Sequence record: MK817115.1
Strand: one strand, 5' to 3'
DNA: 64,000 nt
Below are positions 3,072-62,285 of the stretch, piece by piece. Position 1 is the first letter of the stretch. Each line of letters begins with the position of its first letter. The notes below the pieces were generated by a model that ran no database searches, was not told where the DNA came from, and saw only the letters and a program-made list of their open reading frames with translations. The position numbers and the translations under genes are program-made.

Positions 3072-6000
3072 ATGTACTCAATAAAAACTGACTTAGATAT
3101 TACTGGTGCTGGTACGGTTGGTAAGGATCTTTTAGTCAAAGGAAATGCTGTTTTCAACAATAACCTAACTGTAAATGGTACTGTAACTTTTGCAAATGCA
3201 ACTTTTACTGCCATTGAATCATCAACTGCCAACATTACATCTACTTTAGATGTAGGTGGCAAAGCAACACTTTCTGGTGGTCTTGGTGTTGAGGGTAATA
3301 CTACAATCGGTAGTGCAGTTGTTGGGTCTGATACAGCAACAATTAATTCAAACGCTACCTTTAACGGTACTGTATCAGTTGGTTCTGATTTTACACAAAC
3401 TGCTGGTACAACCACTCTACAAGCAACTAAAGTTAAAAACTTAGAAGTTGCTGAAACAACAGCATTTAAAGGTAATATTACTGCTGATGTTGGGACTACT
3501 GCTGCATTTGATAAAATTACTGCTAATACCGCAGAAATTACTAATGTAAGTACAACAGATATTAGTAGTACTGGTACTGCTACATTTAACGATGTGACAA
3601 TTAGTGGTACACTTGGTGGTGAGTTTAATCTATCTGACTTAAATGCAGTAACATTGAACGTTACTGGTGCATCTAACCAACAAGGTGCAGTAACTTTCGG
3701 TGCTAACGTAACTGGTATTAACAGTACTGCTACTTTTAAAGACATTCGTATTGGTTCTAACTCTGAATCACAAACCTTCAGATTAAGCTTCCCTTACACT
3801 GCTCCTGGTAAACGCCCAACTGTTATTCTACAAAACGAAATTCAGTCCGAGCTAATGTCACCTGCAAACTTGACAGTATTGACCTCTGCTTCTTTTGGTA
3901 ATGCGTCATTATCTTCTTATGGTATTACTGGTAATGGTCTAAACAAATTAGATTATCTAACAGTTTCTGGTAACAATACACAATCACCAGACACACCACT
4001 ATTAGAAGTTCAAAAAGGAAAAACTAAAGTTGCTGACTTTGAAGTAACCGGAACTGCAACTATTCCAAATATCGAAAGTACTGGTACTGCTAATTTTAAT
4101 AACATTAATGTTTCTGGTCTTCTTGGTGGAACGTTCCAACTAGACGATATTAATGCAGTATCTTTGAACGTTACTGGTGTAACTTCATTAGTTGGTGGTG
4201 TTACTCTTGGTTCTAATATTACTGGTTATAACAGTACTGCATCCTTTAAAGCTATCAGCTTAGGTCAAAATAGTCAAGATGCGGCAGTGAAACTAGGTTT
4301 TGGATATACTGCACCAGGTCAACGCCCAACAGTTATTCTACCTAACGAAGTTCAATCAGAAGTCGTTTCTCCTTCTACATTGAACGTTCTTAAAACAGCA
4401 ACTTTCGGTAACGCTTCTCTTTCCACTTATGGTATTACTGGTAACGGTCTAAACAAACTAGATTACCTAACTATTACTGGTAACGAAACACAAGCTCCAG
4501 GTACACCATTCCTACAAGTTGGTGGTAAAGCAATTCTTAATGATGTTGAATTTACTGGAACAGTAACTGGACTAACTGTTGATGTTAGTGGGCAGGATCT
4601 AACACCTAATTCTGTTGTCGCGGCAGCAAATATTAAAGGTGCAACACTTGAAAGTACTGGTAACACTACCGTGGGTGCTAAACTAACTGTTACTGGTGAT
4701 ATTGCTGGTACAACTGCAACTCTTTCTGGTGCATTATCCGCTGGTTCAGTAAGTTCTGGTTCTATTACTGGTACAACTTCTGTATCTGCACCAACAATTA
4801 GTGCATCTACTGAAGTAACGGCCCCTACTATCACTGCGAGTGGAACTGTAAGTGGGCAAACAATTAACGGTACTAATATTAGTGCAACAACTCTGACTGC
4901 ACCAACTATTAGTGGTAATACTAACTTTACAGAAAATGTTGATATTACTGGTAGCTTAACTGTTGGTTCTCTAGACTTGAGCACTACCGATATTAATGCT
5001 AAATCAATCACTACTACTGCTGGTGCAACTATTGGTGGTGATTTAGTAGTTCAAGGCTCTTTTGATTTATCAGCAGCCGACCTTAATGTTAAATCATTAA
5101 CTACTTCTGGTATTGTTAAAAGTAATGATCTTGTTAATGCTAACGTACTTCCAGTACTTAATAGTACTACCATAACGGCAACTACTGTTAATGCTGATGA
5201 TATAACTGTTACCGGATCTGCTAATTTGGGTACAATTTACTCAAGCTCATCTGTTCTAGTTGGGTCAACTTTAACTGTAACTGGTGAAACTACAACTGCA
5301 TCGTTGGTTACCCCAACCATTTCAAATGCAAGTGGTGTCACTATTTCCAATAATACAAATGTAACTGGTGACCTAACTGTTACTGGTGCAGTTATTCCAG
5401 GCTCTATCGATCTAGCAACAACTGATGTTAATGCTAAATCCATTACTACTACTGCTGGTGCAACTATTGGTGGTAACCTAACTGTTAATGGTACAGTAGA
5501 TCTTACTACGGCTGATGTTACTGTCAAATCTTTAACTAGTACTGGTGCAATTGTTAGTAATGAATCCACAATTAGTAGTGTTCTACCTAAACTTCAAAGT
5601 ACTGATGCAACTATTGCAACCCTTGGTTCAACAACTGCAAATATTACTAATTTGAATGTTACTGGTGCATCTACCGTAGCTGACGTAACTTCTTCAGGTA
5701 AAGTTAAAGCAGTTTCTGTAGAAACCCCAACAATTAGTAACGTTGATGGTGTATCTATTTCCAATAATACATCTATTACTGGTGACCTAACAGTTTCTGG
5801 TACAGTAACACCAGGTGCAATTGATTTGAGCACAACTGATGTAAGTGCAAAATCCATTACTACTACCGCTGGAGCAAATATTGGTGGAGATCTTGTTGTT
5901 TCTGGTACAGTTGATTTAAGTGGTGCTGATGTATCTGTTAAATCTCTAACAAGTACTGGTATTATTACAGTTAGTAGTGCAGAAGGTATCAACGTTCTAC

Positions 6001-12454: not shown

Positions 12455-13047
12455 TATTCTTCCTTGAAAAATGTAATAAAATGTTCCATATGTTTTTCGG
12501 TGGCATTGCGTGAACCAATACCAGTCCAGTTACCATGTGGTGCTGGAACGACGAATGTTTGTGTGAACTCTTTCAGTACTGTATCGAAATAAAATACTGA
12601 ACGTGAATTCATATCATAACAATAAATTTCAGGATTTTCAACTGAATCCATATACATCTGTACTGCCCATGCAGTACCACCACTTACCTTAGTTGGTGAT
12701 GTGATATTTGCAATACAATATATTCTTTCTGTATTAAGTATCTGATAACTATTCCTTGCAAGTAAGTTGTAAACATAAGAACCAGGCTTTGGTACTTTTC
12801 GCTGCAACGAGTAACATGCAATGTTTAGTTGATTTAATATAGAAATATCAGATAGAATATTGGATGGTATTTCTAATATAGTACTTTCATCTACACTATG
12901 CTCATGACCTTTGAATGAAAAATTAATAACTTCAAATCCATTATTTTTTGCATAGATAGAAAAAAGGCGGTCAGCACCTGCTGCCCCGCCACTAAAACAT
13001 ACATTAGATAAACCTTTAATTGCTTCATCTAATTCATTCTTTTTCAT
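12454..13047 (-). CDS. Standalone SLOG-superfamily (DprA/LOG/YpsA-like) nucleotide-binding protein
   Basis: SGGAAGAD glycine loop near the N-terminus, later SGGTAWAV and TGIGSR motifs. Confidence 0.65.
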   Translation of the reverse strand: MKKNELDEAIKGLSNVCFSGGAAGADRLFSIYAKNNGFEVINFSFKGHEHSVDESTILEIPSNILSDISILNQLNIACYSLQRKVPKPGSYVYNLLARNSYQILNTERIYCIANITSPTKVSGGTAWAVQMYMDSVENPEIYCYDMNSRSVFYFDTVLKEFTQTFVVPAPHGNWTGIGSRNATEKHMEHFITFFKEE

Positions 13048-13989: not shown

Positions 13990-14018
13990 ATTATATCATA
14001 TTTTTATAAGTTGTCCCA
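13990..14018 (-). promoter_or_regulatory. Promoter, TGGGACA-N16-TATAAT class
   Basis: Minus strand TGGGACA acttataaaaatatga TATAAT. Confidence 0.7.
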
Positions 14019-31698: not shown

Positions 31699-31747
31699 TA
31701 TATTCTCCGAAAAGAAAGGACTCTGTGGTCAGAGTCCTTATTTTAAA

Positions 31748-32005
31748 TTATTCTTCTTCACCGAAACGGATTTTCTTTAATTCTTTTCGATGCTTTCTAG
31801 CTATTGTACTTTTGTGAAGTCTATTACTGCGTTTTGTGTCTTTTGTAATGTACCATGAATCTTCTGGTGCATCATAATCACAAAATCCATCTTCCGTAAT
31901 TGTTCCTAAAAATGCAGATTTTTTAGGAATATTAGTTTGAGCTTTAGTCTGAAATTGACCTTTTGCTAATTGTTCACGAAAACTGAGCATAATAGTATCT
32001 CCCAA
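31748..32005 (-). CDS. Small basic hypothetical protein
   Basis: 85-aa ORF followed by a terminator hairpin at 31713-31740. Confidence 0.5.
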   Translation of the reverse strand: MGDTIMLSFREQLAKGQFQTKAQTNIPKKSAFLGTITEDGFCDYDAPEDSWYITKDTKRSNRLHKSTIARKHRKELKKIRFGEEE

Positions 32006-32036
32006 ATTGTTAAGAAGAACTTTTTGTTCTTCACAT

Positions 32037-32288
32037 TTATTTAGGGTTGCCAGAAACCTTCACATATTTGATAAATGCCAAAATATCATCTTTACTAAAA
32101 GATTTTACAATAAATTCGACAGCGGAATCATACTGTTCTTGTTTAGATAGATATTCTTTCATCTTGTTAATTTTAATCTGGGCTTTTTCTTTAGCTATTG
32201 AAATATCAGGAATTTTGAACTCTACTCCCAACGTATCAGCTAGTTGTTTTGCACGAGATGATACTTTTTCAATATCCATTAGTTCCAA
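32037..32288 (-). CDS. Hypothetical protein
   Basis: 83-aa ORF overlapping the glutaredoxin stop. Confidence 0.55.
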   Translation of the reverse strand: MELMDIEKVSSRAKQLADTLGVEFKIPDISIAKEKAQIKINKMKEYLSKQEQYDSAVEFIVKSFSKDDILAFIKYVKVSGNPK

Positions 32289-32527
32289 CGACCTTCTTTA
32301 AGACCTTCAATAAACCCAGTACAACCACCTGGCACATAAATGTCATTTACGAAAATTTGAGGAACTTGACGAACTGGTTCACCACAAATTTCAGACAGTT
32401 TTGAACCATCGATACCTTCAGCAACAATATCTACAAACTCCATTTCAAATTTATTTTGTTCACATACAGCTTTTGCAGTGTCGCAAAATTTACAACCAGT
32501 CTTGCGACCATAAATTTTAACTTTCAT
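32279..32527 (-). CDS. Glutaredoxin (T4 NrdC-like)
   Basis: CKFC active site, VRQVPQIF and GGC. Confidence 0.93.
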   Translation of the reverse strand: MKVKIYGRKTGCKFCDTAKAVCEQNKFEMEFVDIVAEGIDGSKLSEICGEPVRQVPQIFVNDIYVPGGCTGFIEGLKEGRWN

Positions 32528-32528
32528 G

Positions 32529-33002: not shown

Positions 33003-33031
33003 ATTATATCAGTTATTGGTTTTTTGTCCCA
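33003..33031 (-). promoter_or_regulatory. Promoter, TGGGACA-N16-TATAAT class
   Basis: Minus strand TGGGACA aaaaaccaataactga TATAAT, ~40 nt upstream of the NUDIX ATG. Confidence 0.7.
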
Positions 33032-42491: not shown

Positions 42492-42539
42492 TTTATTTCT
42501 CCAAAAGAAAAGGAGAGTCACAATGACTCTCCATATATT

Positions 42540-43012: not shown

Positions 43013-43441
43013 TTAGTTAATAATAAAGGTAATTTCAGGATTCATTTCAGAAACTGCATTGCGTTTACTTCTATCCCATAGTATTCTGTTATTATACAAA
43101 GAAGAATCACATACTACAAGTAAGCAATTTCTTAATCTACTTACAGTACTTTGATTATTTAAATCAGTTTCTGAAATAAAAAATACATTTTCAGGAACTA
43201 CTAAAGGAATAGATTTATCAAAAAACAAAACTACAATAGGTCTTGTTGTATGAACTGATTTAACGAAATCCAAAATACTATTATAAAAATTAGTTTCTTT
43301 AGTAATTACTGACGGATCTTTAATTCTTTTCAAATATTGCTGTGGTAATTGATGTTCGTCTTTTATCTGAAACTCAAAATATTCTTTGAATAACATTTGT
43401 GTTAATTCGGATTTATCGGATATTTTCGTTGTGTTACTCAT
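43013..43441 (-). CDS. Hypothetical protein
   Basis: 142-aa ORF. Confidence 0.45.
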   Translation of the reverse strand: MSNTTKISDKSELTQMLFKEYFEFQIKDEHQLPQQYLKRIKDPSVITKETNFYNSILDFVKSVHTTRPIVVLFFDKSIPLVVPENVFFISETDLNNQSTVSRLRNCLLVVCDSSLYNNRILWDRSKRNAVSEMNPEITFIIN

Positions 43442-43581
43442 TCACTTCGTTCTCTCGTAACTCAAGAAGTCACTGCGTTTACTTCGTAAACTAGTTCCTT
43501 CTGAAAATGATAATGTACTTTAAAAACTTGACGGGATTTGTTGAGGACTATTACATCCCCCCGCAGGGGAATGAAGGTAAT

Positions 43582-43604
43582 AAAAAAGAGACAATTAAGT
43601 CTCT
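43582..43604 (-). terminator. Rho-independent terminator closing the candidate ncRNA
   Basis: Minus strand AGAGAC-TTAATT-GTCTCT followed by TTTTT. Confidence 0.6.
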
Positions 43605-43643
43605 CTTGACGATGATGGCATCGGATATTATCGAATTGCGAAT

Positions 43644-43825
43644 TTCTCAAATTTTGGACGGATCTTTCTTGTACCAAAATTTAGAGAGCGAAAGCGGGTT
43701 GCTCGGTTTCTCTCTATCGCAGTCATATGCAACGGTCGCTGGTCTTTTCATCAACAGCACTCAGTACTAACTCTATTCGATCAAAGTAGTACTTGTTCTC
43801 AAATTTTGGACGCAACTTTCTTGTA
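43644..43825. repeat. Two 30-nt direct repeats (28/30 identical) 152 bp apart
   Basis: TTCTCAAATTTTGGACGGATCTTTCTTGTA (43644) and TTCTCAAATTTTGGACGCAACTTTCTTGTA (43796). Confidence 0.9.
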
Positions 43826-44102
43826 AAAATTGCGTCCGCTATCCTTGAACTCCCTTAGCAAATCTGGTAAGGTGCGAACCTTATACATCTATCTAGGAAC
43901 TCTCTGTATGCTTATCGGAGTTCTTTATACAGCCGTGTCGCCGTGATTCGTGGTCTTACATCGTGTTTGTTTGAATGCCAGTACTCTAACAGGTTTCTTC
44001 TGCTGTTCGCTACAACGGTAAAGCTCATCTATCCTTTACATTTTCAAGAGAAGTAGGTTCTCAGTGTCCATTTTTCAATGTCCGTTGTCATTTTCTATAT
44101 AC

Positions 44103-44131
44103 ATTATATCATTGGAACATATAATGTCCCA
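44103..44131 (-). promoter_or_regulatory. Promoter, TGGGACA-N16-TATAAT class, firing into the non-coding region
   Basis: Minus strand TGGGACA ttatatgttccaatga TATAAT. Confidence 0.7.
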
Positions 44132-44530
44132 TTACATGTATACTTTTTTAAAATCCTTAGAACAACGATCAAAAATTGTGTTTATGAATTCAACATCTTC
44201 GATAATATTCGAATCGTTAGCAACATTTTCATTTCTTGTCGTGTTCCTATATGTGTGTTCAGGATGATTGTATACCACCTTGACTACATTATTTAGGTCT
44301 ATAAAATTTGACGTTTTTTGCGTATATGAAGCCTGAAGCTTGATGAGTTTACCATCATTCTCAAGATTGGTTTTATGAATTAGTTCTTCAATACCAGTTA
44401 AATGGCTATAGCTATCTTTTTCTTTTACAAAAGTAATAGTAACAAGAACTGCTTTCTCATCTCCCATATCGGAAATGTTTTTTACAGCACTGATAATTTC
44501 TAAGTTTGAAAAATCTAATTCTTTAAGCAT
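44132..44530 (-). CDS. Hypothetical protein
   Basis: 132-aa ORF. Confidence 0.5.
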   Translation of the reverse strand: MLKELDFSNLEIISAVKNISDMGDEKAVLVTITFVKEKDSYSHLTGIEELIHKTNLENDGKLIKLQASYTQKTSNFIDLNNVVKVVYNHPEHTYRNTTRNENVANDSNIIEDVEFINTIFDRCSKDFKKVYM

Positions 44531-44940: not shown

Positions 44941-45552
44941 TCAATCATGTTTATTCAATTTCTTCTGTTCTTTTTTCAAAGCTTTCATATGACGACCAAA
45001 CTCTCGAACATGCCATAGATGATCAGTTTCCCATAATTCTTGACGTAACCTACGTTCTTCTAGTAGTTTCGACTTGTCAATGTTATTTTTCTTTTTTTGT
45101 ACATTAAAGAAATTATTCATATGTTCTTGGAGAAGATTACGACCTTTAACTTTCTCAAGAAACTCATCAACTGTTTCAGTTTTATTCGAACGTAGTTGAT
45201 TACATCTGGAGCACATAGTATTAAAGTTTGACTCTAAATCAGGTCCACCCTTAGATGCCAGATGATTATGGTCAACTGTCATTAAAACTTCATAAAGACC
45301 ACATACAGCATATACATTTAAATGTGGTTTACCATATACTGGATCAGAACATAATGAACGTTCAATGCGTACTTCAGTAGCTTCAATCCCACATGCCACG
45401 CATTTTGGATTCTTAACAAAAGTAAGAACTTTTTGTGGGAAATATCGAAAAGTAATACCATTTAAAGTGTAGCGTTTCATCTTAGTACTTCGTTGATTTA
45501 ATTCTTCAAGAAGTGATAATTTTGTCGTATAGTAAACATGATATTTGTTCAT
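44941..45552 (-). CDS. HNH endonuclease-like protein
   Basis: CVACG and TVDHNHLASKGGPDLESNFNTMCSRCNQLRSN (HNH with Zn ligands); probable start MNKYHV just after the o-spanin stop. Confidence 0.75.
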   Translation of the reverse strand: MNKYHVYYTTKLSLLEELNQRSTKMKRYTLNGITFRYFPQKVLTFVKNPKCVACGIEATEVRIERSLCSDPVYGKPHLNVYAVCGLYEVLMTVDHNHLASKGGPDLESNFNTMCSRCNQLRSNKTETVDEFLEKVKGRNLLQEHMNNFFNVQKKKNNIDKSKLLEERRLRQELWETDHLWHVREFGRHMKALKKEQKKLNKHD

Positions 45553-45553
45553 T

Positions 45554-45862
45554 TTATTCCTTGATATTGATTTTAATATCTTTACCTTGTAAATCACGAA
45601 TAGTTTTAATCAATGCGTCGTGTTTTAAAGCACATTCATTGTAGACTGCATCCCAACGAGTAAGTACTTTAAGAATTTCTGCACCATCATAACCTTTAAA
45701 ACCATTTTTGTCAATCATAATTTTTTGTGGTAGAGGTGTATCATCATCACATCTTTCTAACAGAATTTCTTGTTTAATTGGTGCGGGGGATTGTAGTTTT
45801 ACTTGCTCGGCACACCCACTTATAATTAAAAAAGAAATCATTGGAACTAATAATTTTTTCAT
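45554..45862 (-). CDS. Outer-membrane spanin (Rz1-like lipoprotein)
   Basis: Lipoprotein signal MKKLLVPMISFLIISG-C, proline-rich segment, CA..HDAL; ATGA overlap with the i-spanin. Confidence 0.8.
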   Translation of the reverse strand: MKKLLVPMISFLIISGCAEQVKLQSPAPIKQEILLERCDDDTPLPQKIMIDKNGFKGYDGAEILKVLTRWDAVYNECALKHDALIKTIRDLQGKDIKINIKE

Positions 45863-59696: not shown

Positions 59697-60167
59697 CTAA
59701 AAATCTTTATTTTTATATAGTATTCTTTGATTATTTGAACCACGGAAAGGTAATTTTAAATTCTTTTCGGACTCAATAAACTTACCATCAACTAATACAT
59801 CTAAGTACTGAAGTATATCTTTAGCATGATTTTTCATAATCTCATCTAAAGTATACCCACTCCAGCACCAAATAGTTTTACTAGGATAAGTTTCTTTAAC
59901 TACTTTGCATAGATTTAAAACTTCATCTATATTCTTTTTCATTAATGGATCGCCGCCTAGAAGTGACAAACCACTAACATATGGTTTTTTTAGTTCCTGT
60001 AGTATAATCTCAACTGTTTCAGTACTGAACAATTGACCACTTCTGTAATCCCATGCTTCTTCATTGAAGCAACCATCACATCCGTGCGAACACCCACTAA
60101 CAAATAAAGAGCAGCGAACGCCCTCTCCATTTACTAAATCATCCTTGATTATCGTCTGGTAATTCAT
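59697..60167 (-). CDS. nrdG: Anaerobic ribonucleotide reductase activating enzyme (radical SAM)
   Basis: NGEGVRCSLFVSGCSHGCDGCFN, GLSLLGGDPL and FRGSNNQRI. Confidence 0.96.
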   Translation of the reverse strand: MNYQTIIKDDLVNGEGVRCSLFVSGCSHGCDGCFNEEAWDYRSGQLFSTETVEIILQELKKPYVSGLSLLGGDPLMKKNIDEVLNLCKVVKETYPSKTIWCWSGYTLDEIMKNHAKDILQYLDVLVDGKFIESEKNLKLPFRGSNNQRILYKNKDF

Positions 60168-60471
60168 CTAATATTGCACTCACTATTTCGACAAGAACAT
60201 CGCCGTGACATGATTTTGGTTTACAGAAACAACCAAGGCGTTTCCCTGCGAGTTCAAGTAATTCATCAATCTTAACTTCTCCACAAGAAATACGTTCAAT
60301 AATGTATTCTCTGAATTTTTCAATTGATTCTTCTCTTGTACTAACAATGAACTCGGCTTTGGTTTGTTTATCTTTAATATGGGTAAATGGGTTTCCCCAT
60401 TTAGACCCACGTCCAATATACACATCATACGGTTCTTTGTATTTGTTAACCACAATTGGCTTTAAATCCAT
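60139..60471 (-). CDS. DUF4326 family protein
   Basis: VVNKYKEPYDVYIGRGSKWGNPF...ELAGKRLGCFCKPKSCHGDVL. Confidence 0.85.
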   Translation of the reverse strand: MDLKPIVVNKYKEPYDVYIGRGSKWGNPFTHIKDKQTKAEFIVSTREESIEKFREYIIERISCGEVKIDELLELAGKRLGCFCKPKSCHGDVLVEIVSAILDELPDDNQG

Positions 60472-60479
60472 AATTTACC

Positions 60480-62285
60480 TTATTTGTGCTGAATACGCTC
60501 ACAACACTCTTGTTGCTTGCCTTTATTGAAGCCACGCGAAGAAGGATTACCCAAGTACCCAGAAACACGACGAATCACTGAGATTGTCTTCTCATTACGA
60601 TTATCACATACAGGACAGTGGAAACCATGTTTATCTACACTGAACTCACCCTGGAAGCCACATTCATAACAATGGTCAACTGGTTGGTTAATACCAAAAT
60701 ATGGTATCTTAGTGTACGCATAGTTAACTAATGTTTCAAGTGCTTGAATGTTGTTTGCTAAGTTTGGAGATTCAACATAACTGATGTTTCCACCGTTACT
60801 TAGGTAAGCAAACCCTTCTTCATAACTCCATTTATCAAATGGAGAACTTTCTACCCATACTGGTTGATGGAAGGAATTTGTGATGTAATCACGTTTTAGT
60901 ACTGAAGGATATTTTGCTTCAATGCAACGTGCAAATTTATAACAAAGCGACTCTGCTGGAGTTCCATATAGACTAAAAGCAATATTACTTTCTTTTTTGA
61001 ACTCATCACATTTTACTTTCATATAATTCAGTACTGACATACAAAACTCCTTACTGATAGAACCAGTGAGGATTTCTGAACATTCAACAAGACCAACATA
61101 ACCAATACTAATACTAGCATAACCATTGTAAAATAGCTTGTCAATAGTTTCTTCTGCACCTAAACGTGCTAATGCACCTTCCATGAACAAAATTGGATTC
61201 TGCTTCGCTTTAGTGCCTTTTAAACGCTCCACACGGTTCATCTGAGCACGATATGCAATATTCATATGCTCGTCTATCTTATCAAAAAACTCTCCATCAG
61301 AATCACTCTCAAGAGCAATTAGAGGTAAATTGATAGAAACCACACCTAAATTGAAACGACCGTTGTATTGTTCATTTCCATTTGAATCTTCCCATTTTCC
61401 TAAGAATGAACGACATCCCATCGGTGTTACAGCAGTACTACTACTTCCCGTCACTTTGTGATTTAATGGAACTGAAACAAAGTCTGGGTAGATTCGTTTT
61501 GATGCACAACGCATAGCTAACTGTTTAAGGTCATAATTACTATCATTGGTATTCATGTTTATACCATCTTGTAAAAAGAAAATTACTTTAGGAAACACTG
61601 GAGTAATCTTATCTTTACCTAAACCATTCTCATGAACTTTTAAGTACTGTTCAGTGATTAATTTACCAAATTTAGAAGTATTAAGCCCTAAACTAAGAGA
61701 AATGAATGCAGCTTGTCCATTAGTGCTAATCATTGAATTAGTCTGGTAAAGTAATGTTTGACATCCATCGTATACTTCTTTTCGTAATTCTTCTTCAATG
61801 AACTCATCACTTAGATTATATTTCTTTTGTTTTTCTAACAGCTTATCCCATGACTTTTGAACGTAAGGTTCTAAACCGACATCAATGTGAGCCAACGATT
61901 GACCGCCGTATTGGGAACTAGCTACAGCTTGTACAATCTGTGTCAGTACTGTACATGCTACACTAAAACTCTTTGGTTCTTCAATTTTGGCACAACCAAT
62001 GGTAAATCCATTTTTTAGCATATCTGGGTAGTTAACTAAGCAACAGTTGGTTAATGGGCTGATATAGTAGTCTAAATCATGAATATGACCATAACCATCA
62101 TTATGCCACTGCATTAGCTCATTTGGAATAACATCTTGTGAATAATGCTTAGATAGGATACCTGCAAGTAAATCCCTGTGTGTATTGACGCATTTCGCAT
62201 CTTTGTTCGCATTTTCGTTGGTAAGATCAGTATTGCTCTGATTGAGGAAATTCGTTACGTCAGTATATAATTTATCTAATTGCAT
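60480..62285 (-). CDS. nrdD: Class III (anaerobic) ribonucleoside-triphosphate reductase, no ATP cone
   Basis: ENANKD, HIHDLDY, TNCCL, QYGGQS, PMGCRSFL, RFNLGVVSINL, TPAESL, Zn-finger CYECG/CPVC and glycyl-radical RRVSGYLG; AGGA RBS before MQLDKL (62285). Confidence 0.98.
   Translation of the reverse strand: MQLDKLYTDVTNFLNQSNTDLTNENANKDAKCVNTHRDLLAGILSKHYSQDVIPNELMQWHNDGYGHIHDLDYYISPLTNCCLVNYPDMLKNGFTIGCAKIEEPKSFSVACTVLTQIVQAVASSQYGGQSLAHIDVGLEPYVQKSWDKLLEKQKKYNLSDEFIEEELRKEVYDGCQTLLYQTNSMISTNGQAAFISLSLGLNTSKFGKLITEQYLKVHENGLGKDKITPVFPKVIFFLQDGINMNTNDSNYDLKQLAMRCASKRIYPDFVSVPLNHKVTGSSSTAVTPMGCRSFLGKWEDSNGNEQYNGRFNLGVVSINLPLIALESDSDGEFFDKIDEHMNIAYRAQMNRVERLKGTKAKQNPILFMEGALARLGAEETIDKLFYNGYASISIGYVGLVECSEILTGSISKEFCMSVLNYMKVKCDEFKKESNIAFSLYGTPAESLCYKFARCIEAKYPSVLKRDYITNSFHQPVWVESSPFDKWSYEEGFAYLSNGGNISYVESPNLANNIQALETLVNYAYTKIPYFGINQPVDHCYECGFQGEFSVDKHGFHCPVCDNRNEKTISVIRRVSGYLGNPSSRGFNKGKQQECCERIQHK

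Follow-up and report, generated by a model that had tools for sequence, protein, structure and literature searches.

ROOL and GOLLD (RF03087 and RF01998) are RNAs of phages and integrated elements in the size class of ~500-800 nucleotides (nt), transcribed from a unit of their own, in which many covarying helices and pseudoknots are combined with long invariant unpaired stretches. To our knowledge, large RNAs with such conserved tertiary-type structure are rare, and each class so far has been a ribozyme, the core of a ribonucleoprotein (RNP) or a self-assembling particle. Here we describe an RNA that shares these features from Escherichia phage vB_EcoM_phAPEC6 (MK817115.1, 352,598 base pairs (bp)), a Rak2-like jumbo phage of the genus Asteriusvirus. 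It is encoded in the gap between genes at positions 43442-44131 of a 64-kilobase (kb) stretch of this genome (the window; record positions 186001-250000, same strand), and coordinates below are those of the window unless stated. The reading of this gap as a promoter-driven, large structured non-coding RNA (ncRNA), proposed in a first-pass annotation made from the letters alone, is strongly supported by covariation, by the strand signal of G·U pairs, by the failure of the small open reading frames (ORFs) in coding tests and by a conserved promoter.

The RNA resembles ROOL and GOLLD in its general kind and is unrelated to them: no covariance model of their families matches the window or ten homolog loci. 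Its copy number and distribution are also unusual. Unlike ROOL and GOLLD, it is found in Enterobacterales jumbo phages and chromosomal islands, reaches two to five paralogs per genome and is followed by accessory hairpins past its terminator. The setting differs as well, since ARAGORN finds no tRNA or tmRNA gene anywhere in the 64-kb window. A search of Rfam 15 (the ROOL, GOLLD, OLE, raiA and HEARO models and 4227 others), a check that the first-pass annotation had proposed for the first three, gives no match in the window at gathering score; with E up to 10, only chance-level snoRNA-type matches appear across 43300-44300, and the only match in the ten homolog loci is the host ffs gene. RNase P RNA and group I and II introns likewise have no Rfam match, and the ORFs on both sides are complete, with no relation from copy to copy. 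The ARAGORN and Rfam negatives bear out the earlier statement that the element is not a tRNA, a tmRNA, RNase P RNA or an intron. In the literature that could be searched, covering phAPEC6, other Rak2-like phages, ncRNAs of jumbo phages, ROOL and GOLLD, we found no description of this RNA, which is a family not yet described.

In the Pseudomonas jumbo phage PA5oct, a distant relative of the Rak2-like phages, four ncRNAs of 236-619 nt (ncRNA001-004) were defined by RNA-seq, of which ncRNA001 and ncRNA002 show high expression (PMC7318152). Those two were compared with the RNA described here and rejected as homologs because they have no sequence similarity to it.

Fold, covariation and coding potential

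The gap is bounded by the stop codon of a gene of 132 amino acids (aa) (DUF7325, 44132-44530) and the ATG of a 142-aa ORF (43013-43441), and the longest ORF within it encodes 87 aa. It had been singled out as the largest gap between credible genes and as more GC-rich than its surroundings. Both statements hold: its GC content is 0.40-0.41, compared with 0.25-0.33 in the flanks, and the only longer stretch of the window without ORFs of at least 100 aa (31699-32528) is occupied by three ORFs of 82-85 aa. The latter lie in tandem on the minus strand and resemble small genes, not another RNA.

The 517-nt RNA has a predicted fold of -130.8 kcal/mol (z = -3.3 versus shuffles). Candidate homologs came from pattern scans of IMG/VR, metagenomes and a set with one genome for each species, and nhmmer was run after each scan. 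It gave 150 hits, including 105 at full length, 80 of them distinct and 67 below 95% identity. MAFFT alignments, unfitted to any structure, were searched blind for stacked covarying columns, and this search recovered 13 helices. Conservation and covariation in relatives had been named in advance as a check, and both are found: across the 67 non-redundant homologs, 97.0% of the cells of these helices (62 bp) are canonical and 53 of the 62 pairs changed on both sides, figures that carry some selection bias because the helices were picked by the covariation scan, although the margin over the controls is still very large. Sliding the 3' partner by 1-3 columns leaves 38-42% canonical cells and 26-30 pairs with two-sided changes, and column shuffles leave 73.5 +/- 0.4% canonical cells. 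A separate alignment of 22 diverse members, independent of the first, was given to RNAalifold, which predicts 64 pairs, with compensatory changes at 45. Across the helices, G·U cells outnumber A·C cells by 300 to 27, which assigns the structure to the strand that is read from the promoter.

The elements of the fold in the window copy are as follows.

44009-44088, minus strand: pseudoknot P1, ACAACGG (44088-44082) with CCGUUGU (44018-44012); two-sided changes at 7 of 8 pairs.
44056-44046 with 44036-44029, minus strand: hairpin P2, which covaries, with conserved loop GAAAAUGUA.
43929-44006, minus strand: P3 (44006-44002 with 43933-43929) and P3a (43992-43989 with 43944-43941), enclosing a variable insert; 99% canonical, three pairs changed on both sides.
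43923-43917 with 43903-43897, minus strand: hairpin P4, supported by covariation.
43883-43879 with 43872-43868, minus strand: hairpin P5, supported by covariation, followed by invariant UAAGGGAG.
43850-43846 with ~43799-43795, minus strand: stem PA, supported by covariation, enclosing optional module A.
43837-43808, minus strand: module A, hairpin GGACGCAA/UUGCGUCC inside PA, holding one copy of a 30-mer.
43793-43782 with 43775-43763, minus strand: long hairpin P6, supported by covariation.
43781-43775 (loop L6) with 43636-43630 (the strand directly 3' of P8), minus strand: pseudoknot PK-L6, supported by covariation.
43759-43755 with 43741-43737, minus strand: P7, in the 3' pseudoknot core (43630-43759), supported by covariation.
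43733-43729 (GUUGC) with 43702-43698 (GCAAC, in the P9 loop), minus strand: PK-a, 100% canonical.
43721-43717 with 43641-43637, minus strand: P8, 99% canonical.
43714-43710 (GAGAG) with 43694-43690 (CUUUC), minus strand: P9, 100% canonical.
43687-43685 with 43647-43645, minus strand: P10, enclosing optional module B (43682-43649).
43622-43619 with 43611-43608, minus strand: P11, a predicted helix only.

The alignments thus support three pseudoknots, P1, PK-a and PK-L6. The 3' partner of P1 sits in the loop of a 3-bp closing helix (GCU 44024-44022 with AGC 44011-44009) that itself covaries. PK-L6 comprises 7 bp that are 99.8-100% canonical, with changes on both sides at all seven pairs, and its sequence differs in each of the four phAPEC6 paralogs. 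The 3' pseudoknot core is the best-conserved stretch across genera, and many invariant unpaired stretches occur along the RNA. With more than 400 nt, no coding content and covarying helices that include pseudoknots, the RNA falls in the operational class of large ornate ncRNAs.

Several stems that the first-pass annotation had drawn are recovered. Its ACAACGG/CCGUUGU (P1), GAACUC/GAGUUC (P4) and AGUACU (P6) stems are backed by covariation, as is its UAAGGU-UCGC-ACCUUA stem in the form UAAGG/CCUUA (P5), and the two module hairpins (43808-43837 and 43649-43682) are supported stems. The AGAGAG/CUCUCU stem did not survive, being only 71% canonical in homologs; the supported pairing there is the GAGAG/CUUUC of P9. 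The 30-nt repeat reported at 43644 and 43796 is real, and corresponds to an optional module with a consensus near UACAAUAUAGAUCCGUCCAAAAUU that is inserted at one or two sites; 17, 31, 13 and 1 of the 62 scorable homologs have zero, one, two and three copies, respectively. The proposal that both copies display UACAAGAAAG in a hairpin loop needs qualifying for module A, where most of it can join an extended stem with a CAA loop. The role first suggested for the repeat, a protein-binding site, would be hypothetical.

The record annotates a hypothetical protein of 87 aa, gp307, at 43507-43770 (plus strand), antisense within the RNA. Only 7 of 67 homologs keep its frame open, and homolog lengths show an even spread over modulo 3. 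Neither gp307 nor a 71-aa ORF on the minus strand has codon periodicity or an excess of third-position variability, in agreement with the earlier description of the unit as non-coding. In several related records, up to six hypothetical proteins are annotated over the homologous stretch.

Promoter, transcript ends and conserved downstream elements

The signals that bound the RNA, and the conserved elements that follow it, are as follows.

44103-44131, minus strand: promoter, with a -35-like TGGGACA (44131-44125) and an extended -10 TGATATAAT (44111-44103).
43582-44096, minus strand: ncRNA body of ~515 nt, with its start predicted from the -10 box and its end placed at the U-tract of T1.
43582-43605, minus strand: intrinsic terminator T1, with a U-tract after the stem AGAGAC/GUCUCU.
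~43575-43551, minus strand: GC hairpin whose G-run is invariant; every copy has it, bacterial copies and those that lack T1 among them.
43543-43527, minus strand: motif CAACAAAUCCCGUCAAG, conserved in the same full set of copies.
43485-43466, minus strand: hairpin GAAGU/ACUUC, with a variable stem and the conserved loop (G)AACGnAGUG(A).
43460-43434, minus strand: hairpin UUAC/GUAA, with the loop (G)AACGnAGUG(A) conserved; it holds the ATG of the 142-aa ORF.

The promoter begins immediately past the stop codon of the upstream gene and is kept in every homolog. A promoter scan recovered it at 44130-44103 as GGGACA-16-TATAAT with TG ahead of the -10 (10 of 12 matches), which agrees with the TGGGACA-N16-TATAAT promoter that had been proposed to point into the gap. 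By sequence it is a sigma-70-type extended -10 promoter, with TATAAT, TG one base upstream and TG(G/A)(G/A)AC 16-17 nt upstream. The motif TG(G/A)(G/A)AC-N14-TGnTATAAT occurs at 22 sites in the phAPEC6 genome, compared with ~1.5 expected, 21 of the 22 being on the minus strand. Genes with such a site upstream include ssb, a dnaB-like gene and a gp55-like late sigma gene; four sites are inside the window (3491-3517, 13990-14018, 33003-33031 and 44103-44131). The "divergent RpoD-like" promoters of CBB and GAP32, which stand ahead of DNA-synthesis genes, are of the same class (PMC5259590). From this company, the class would be a middle-phase promoter, and it may be read by the phage-encoded RpoD-like sigma factor.

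The hairpin with a U-tract that had been taken to close the unit is present in the sequence and in both the minimum free energy and the centroid folds, and its stem covaries in homologs. It was not among the sites listed by a simple terminator scan. T1 is a plain intrinsic terminator in the window copy, yet it is not constant across the family: when strict criteria are applied, 29 of 62 homologs have it and 33 do not, and phAPEC6 copies 2 and 3 lack it. T1 stems vary freely among homologs, with no conserved alternative pairing. In several homologs a bidirectional terminator ends the module and is followed by sequence that reads like the end of a convergent gene. In one paralog group (loci L024, L021, L013 and L005) this terminator is strong, CCAGC...GCUGG flanked by A- and U-runs, and lies ~250 nt beyond T1, so that read-through transcripts of ~750-800 nt are possible.

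Conservation extends ~150 nt past T1 in every copy, bacterial ones included. In the GC hairpin, the G-run is at least 95% conserved and the C strand varies; the motif that follows reads AAAUCYCGUCA across homologs. One or two hairpins with the GAACGnAGUGA loop stand 70-120 nt farther on, with stems that are wholly different and a loop that is kept. A T4-late-type TATAAAT box after the GC hairpin was considered as the reason for this conservation and rejected, because the bacterial copies keep the motif without the box.

Copies in jumbo phages and chromosomal islands

Alignment of the rest of the phAPEC6 genome at its large annotation gaps yielded four dispersed paralogs, each filling an annotation gap of 600-830 bp, at the following record positions.

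40.07-40.68 kb, minus strand: paralog.
150.7-151.4 kb, minus strand: paralog.
229.5-230.1 kb, minus strand: the window copy.
285.2-285.8 kb, minus strand: paralog.

The gene before copy 2 encodes an RpoD-like sigma factor, as in RaK2; copy 3 has a Dam methylase gene nearby, as in Serratia phage BF, and copy 4 an endonuclease VII gene, as in Salmonella phage Munch. Given these shared neighbours of copies 2-4, the positions of the paralogs are old. The four Asteriusvirus copies cluster together in the tree, which suggests concerted evolution. The genes next to the RNA differ and are unrelated between copies.

Distant blastn searches found the non-coding part alone conserved, and the flanking genes not, in 72 Rak2-like phage records, with several matches per genome. 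The hosts are Escherichia, Salmonella, Klebsiella, Cronobacter, Pectobacterium, Yersinia, Serratia, Erwinia and Xanthomonas, and Rak2-like jumbo phages have 2-5 copies per genome. With a phage copy and an island copy as queries, no homolog was found in phages outside the Rak2-like clade, and plasmids gave no match. A looser 15-base core pattern gave extra matches on short contigs in IMG/VR that nhmmer did not confirm and that we took as chance.

Outside the phages, other Enterobacterales (Serratia, Silvania, Buttiauxella, Enterobacter and others) have eight full-length chromosomal homologs. A further full-length homolog is part of an E. coli island that turned up in 2 of the 5,426 complete genomes of this species. 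The islands are ~10-12.5 kb long and carry one RNA copy each, just after an integrase of the tyrosine or large serine type. Some contain a cI/cro-like pair, and there the unit faces the 3' end of the convergent cI gene. The cargo consists of candidate defence genes, PDC-S73 and AbiGi in one island and PDC-M45 in the E. coli island adjacent to ffs. Island copies retain the promoter type and the downstream elements. In the tree, most of them form one clade beside a jumbo-phage paralog and the E. coli copy is placed elsewhere among phage copies; because it groups apart from the main island clade, at least two transfers between phages and islands are indicated.

The ~10-kb island of E. coli LR-29-1 (NZ_AP027515.1, L103:7753-18400), next to ffs, contains an integrase disrupted by IS3, the RNA, a PDC-M45-type candidate trio (DuOB, DUF488 and DUF4326) and a resolvase; iteron-like TATCGATCGTT repeats (12930-13030) lie between the RNA and the next gene. 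A Buttiauxella-type island has a second promoter of the same type before a 52-aa ORF in the interval between integrase and RNA (L100:7186-7214). The only protein common to an island and phAPEC6 is a DUF4326 protein, encoded at 60166-60483 of the window and 41% identical to the product of the E. coli island gene. An ADP-ribosylglycohydrolase was also considered as a shared partner and rejected as a host gene whose presence was judged coincidental. No family assignment was found for island proteins of 286 and 257 aa.

Proposed function of the RNA and alternative explanations

We favour, with a probability of roughly 0.55, a stand-alone structured ncRNA that is made with replication-phase genes. 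The conserved promoter, which belongs to a class of the phage with TG(G/A)GACA and an extended -10, would drive a transcript of ~515 nt. This RNA has at least 13 helices that are conserved, three pseudoknots and many stretches that stay unpaired and invariant, and from the window copy it would stop at T1. Its synthesis would coincide with that of the replication-phase genes behind promoters of the same type, and the several copies would serve dosage. The product would probably act as a free, abundant and compact molecule, namely an RNP scaffold, a decoy or a self-associating particle, and not as an mRNA leader. We prefer a free RNA because the neighbouring genes are unrelated, because some copies are closed by a second, bidirectional terminator, and because invariant unpaired bases and pseudoknots are dense; such density is typical of RNAs that work as folded molecules.

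ROOL and GOLLD form homo-oligomers, and by analogy this RNA may self-assemble through the L6 pairing. In the phi29 packaging RNA (pRNA), loops pair hand in hand between molecules; similarly, L6 covaries perfectly with 43636-43630, and each paralog has its own L6 sequence, as would be expected were the contact intermolecular. The RNA differs from pRNA in having no similarity to it in sequence or size and no link to packaging.

Four observations weigh against a free RNA that ends at T1. The dispersed copies on one strand, and the single copy in each island, also fit a cis-acting role such as that of an origin. No partner protein co-occurs with the RNA when phages and islands are compared. The literature contains no transcriptome for any Rak2-like phage, so that the expression, ends and abundance of the RNA are inferred. 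Finally, the elements past the terminator are as strongly conserved as the core and T1 is missing in about half of the homologs, for which reason the functional unit may be longer or may act partly at the DNA level.

An RNA-primed replication origin of the ColE1 RNA II or T4 oriF/oriG type, the latter raised as an alternative in the first-pass annotation, is less likely. The transcript, perhaps the fraction that passes T1, would start an RNA-DNA hybrid at the G-run and prime leading-strand synthesis; its folded 5' part would control formation of the hybrid, and islands would carry a copy so that the replisome of an infecting phage replicates them. As in ColE1 and T4, a promoter drives a transcript of ~500 nt whose fold could gate priming. 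T4 origins use a middle promoter, and the promoter class here is found before replication genes. Four dispersed copies on one strand, and an invariant G-run and conserved hairpins just past an optional terminator, are also in keeping with an origin, and genes for RNase H, a UvsW-type RNA-DNA helicase and a T4-type replisome are present in the phage genome. The islands hold the module, and no recognisable replication genes were found in them. Unlike the ColE1 and T4 origins, however, the window copy has a strong intrinsic terminator that separates the RNA from the G-run and the other downstream elements, and its tertiary-type structure is far more conserved; three pseudoknots and many invariant unpaired bases exceed the needs of known R-loop primers. 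The promoter scan revealed no antisense regulator, a weak test, and no copy coincides with an inflection in GC skew, which is also a weak test since skew tracks gene orientation. A more specific version, in which the whole module (promoter, RNA, optional terminator, G-run and GAACGnAGUGA hairpins) is an RNA-gated origin captured by defence islands, appears rather doubtful; if true, the islands would be the first satellites or parasites of jumbo phages.

The islands also raise the idea of a phage-island conflict module, which we consider unlikely, and which is compatible with the other explanations. Acting as a decoy, the island copy would titrate a phage factor; alternatively, it would be a sensor or hijack element set off by the transcription programme of the phage. 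The original target or tool would in either case be the phage copies. The full-length copies in islands with an integrase, candidate defence genes and, in some, a cI/cro-like pair are consistent with such a module, as are the shared promoter type and the transfers seen in the tree. This support comes purely from context, however: host sigma-70 alone may suffice to read the promoter, few E. coli genomes have the islands, and their excision, replication or packaging is purely hypothetical.

Even less probable is a cis-acting leader that controls read-through of T1, whether as a riboswitch, a protein-dependent attenuator or a processive antiterminator like put. In copies 1-3, promoter, structured RNA, terminator and same-strand genes follow one another in the order that a leader would require, and conserved hairpins lie between T1 and the next ORF. 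The HK022 put RNA is likewise a structured RNA right after a phage promoter and upstream of a terminator; the RNA described here is ~7 times larger and has stand-alone copies with unrelated or convergent neighbours. Against a leader, the downstream genes are unrelated between copies and form no constant class, copy 4 is antisense to its neighbours, and several homologs end in a bidirectional terminator and an apparent convergent gene end. The freely varying stems of T1, and its frequent absence, leave no conserved terminator/antiterminator alternative, and the island units aim at the 3' end of the convergent cI gene.

That the gap holds small genes, either gp307 or the 71-aa ORF, is highly improbable even though phAPEC6 and several related records annotate hypothetical proteins there and most homologs have an antisense ORF (median ~70 aa), because these frames fail the coding tests and compensatory base-pair changes account for the conservation. 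The annotation of gp307 and of similar hypothetical proteins in dozens of records is accordingly spurious.

A large RNA kept at 2-5 copies in tightly packed genomes, behind a promoter type of replication-phase genes and in common with host defence islands, is unusual. It is a candidate for one of two roles, as replication origin in Rak2-like phages or as a new RNA in the conflict between phage and host, and it is open to genetics because its phages grow on laboratory E. coli.

Three further features lie near the module. The 142-aa ORF directly downstream of it (43013-43441, minus strand) is unannotated in MK817115 and matches nothing in Pfam or NCBIfam. About 800 nt 5' of the RNA promoter stands a gene for an HNH endonuclease (gp310c, 44941-45597, minus strand), which is not associated with the other three copies. 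At 42512-42532, a bidirectional terminator-like hairpin of 9 bp separates a 146-aa DUF5856 gene from the next gene.

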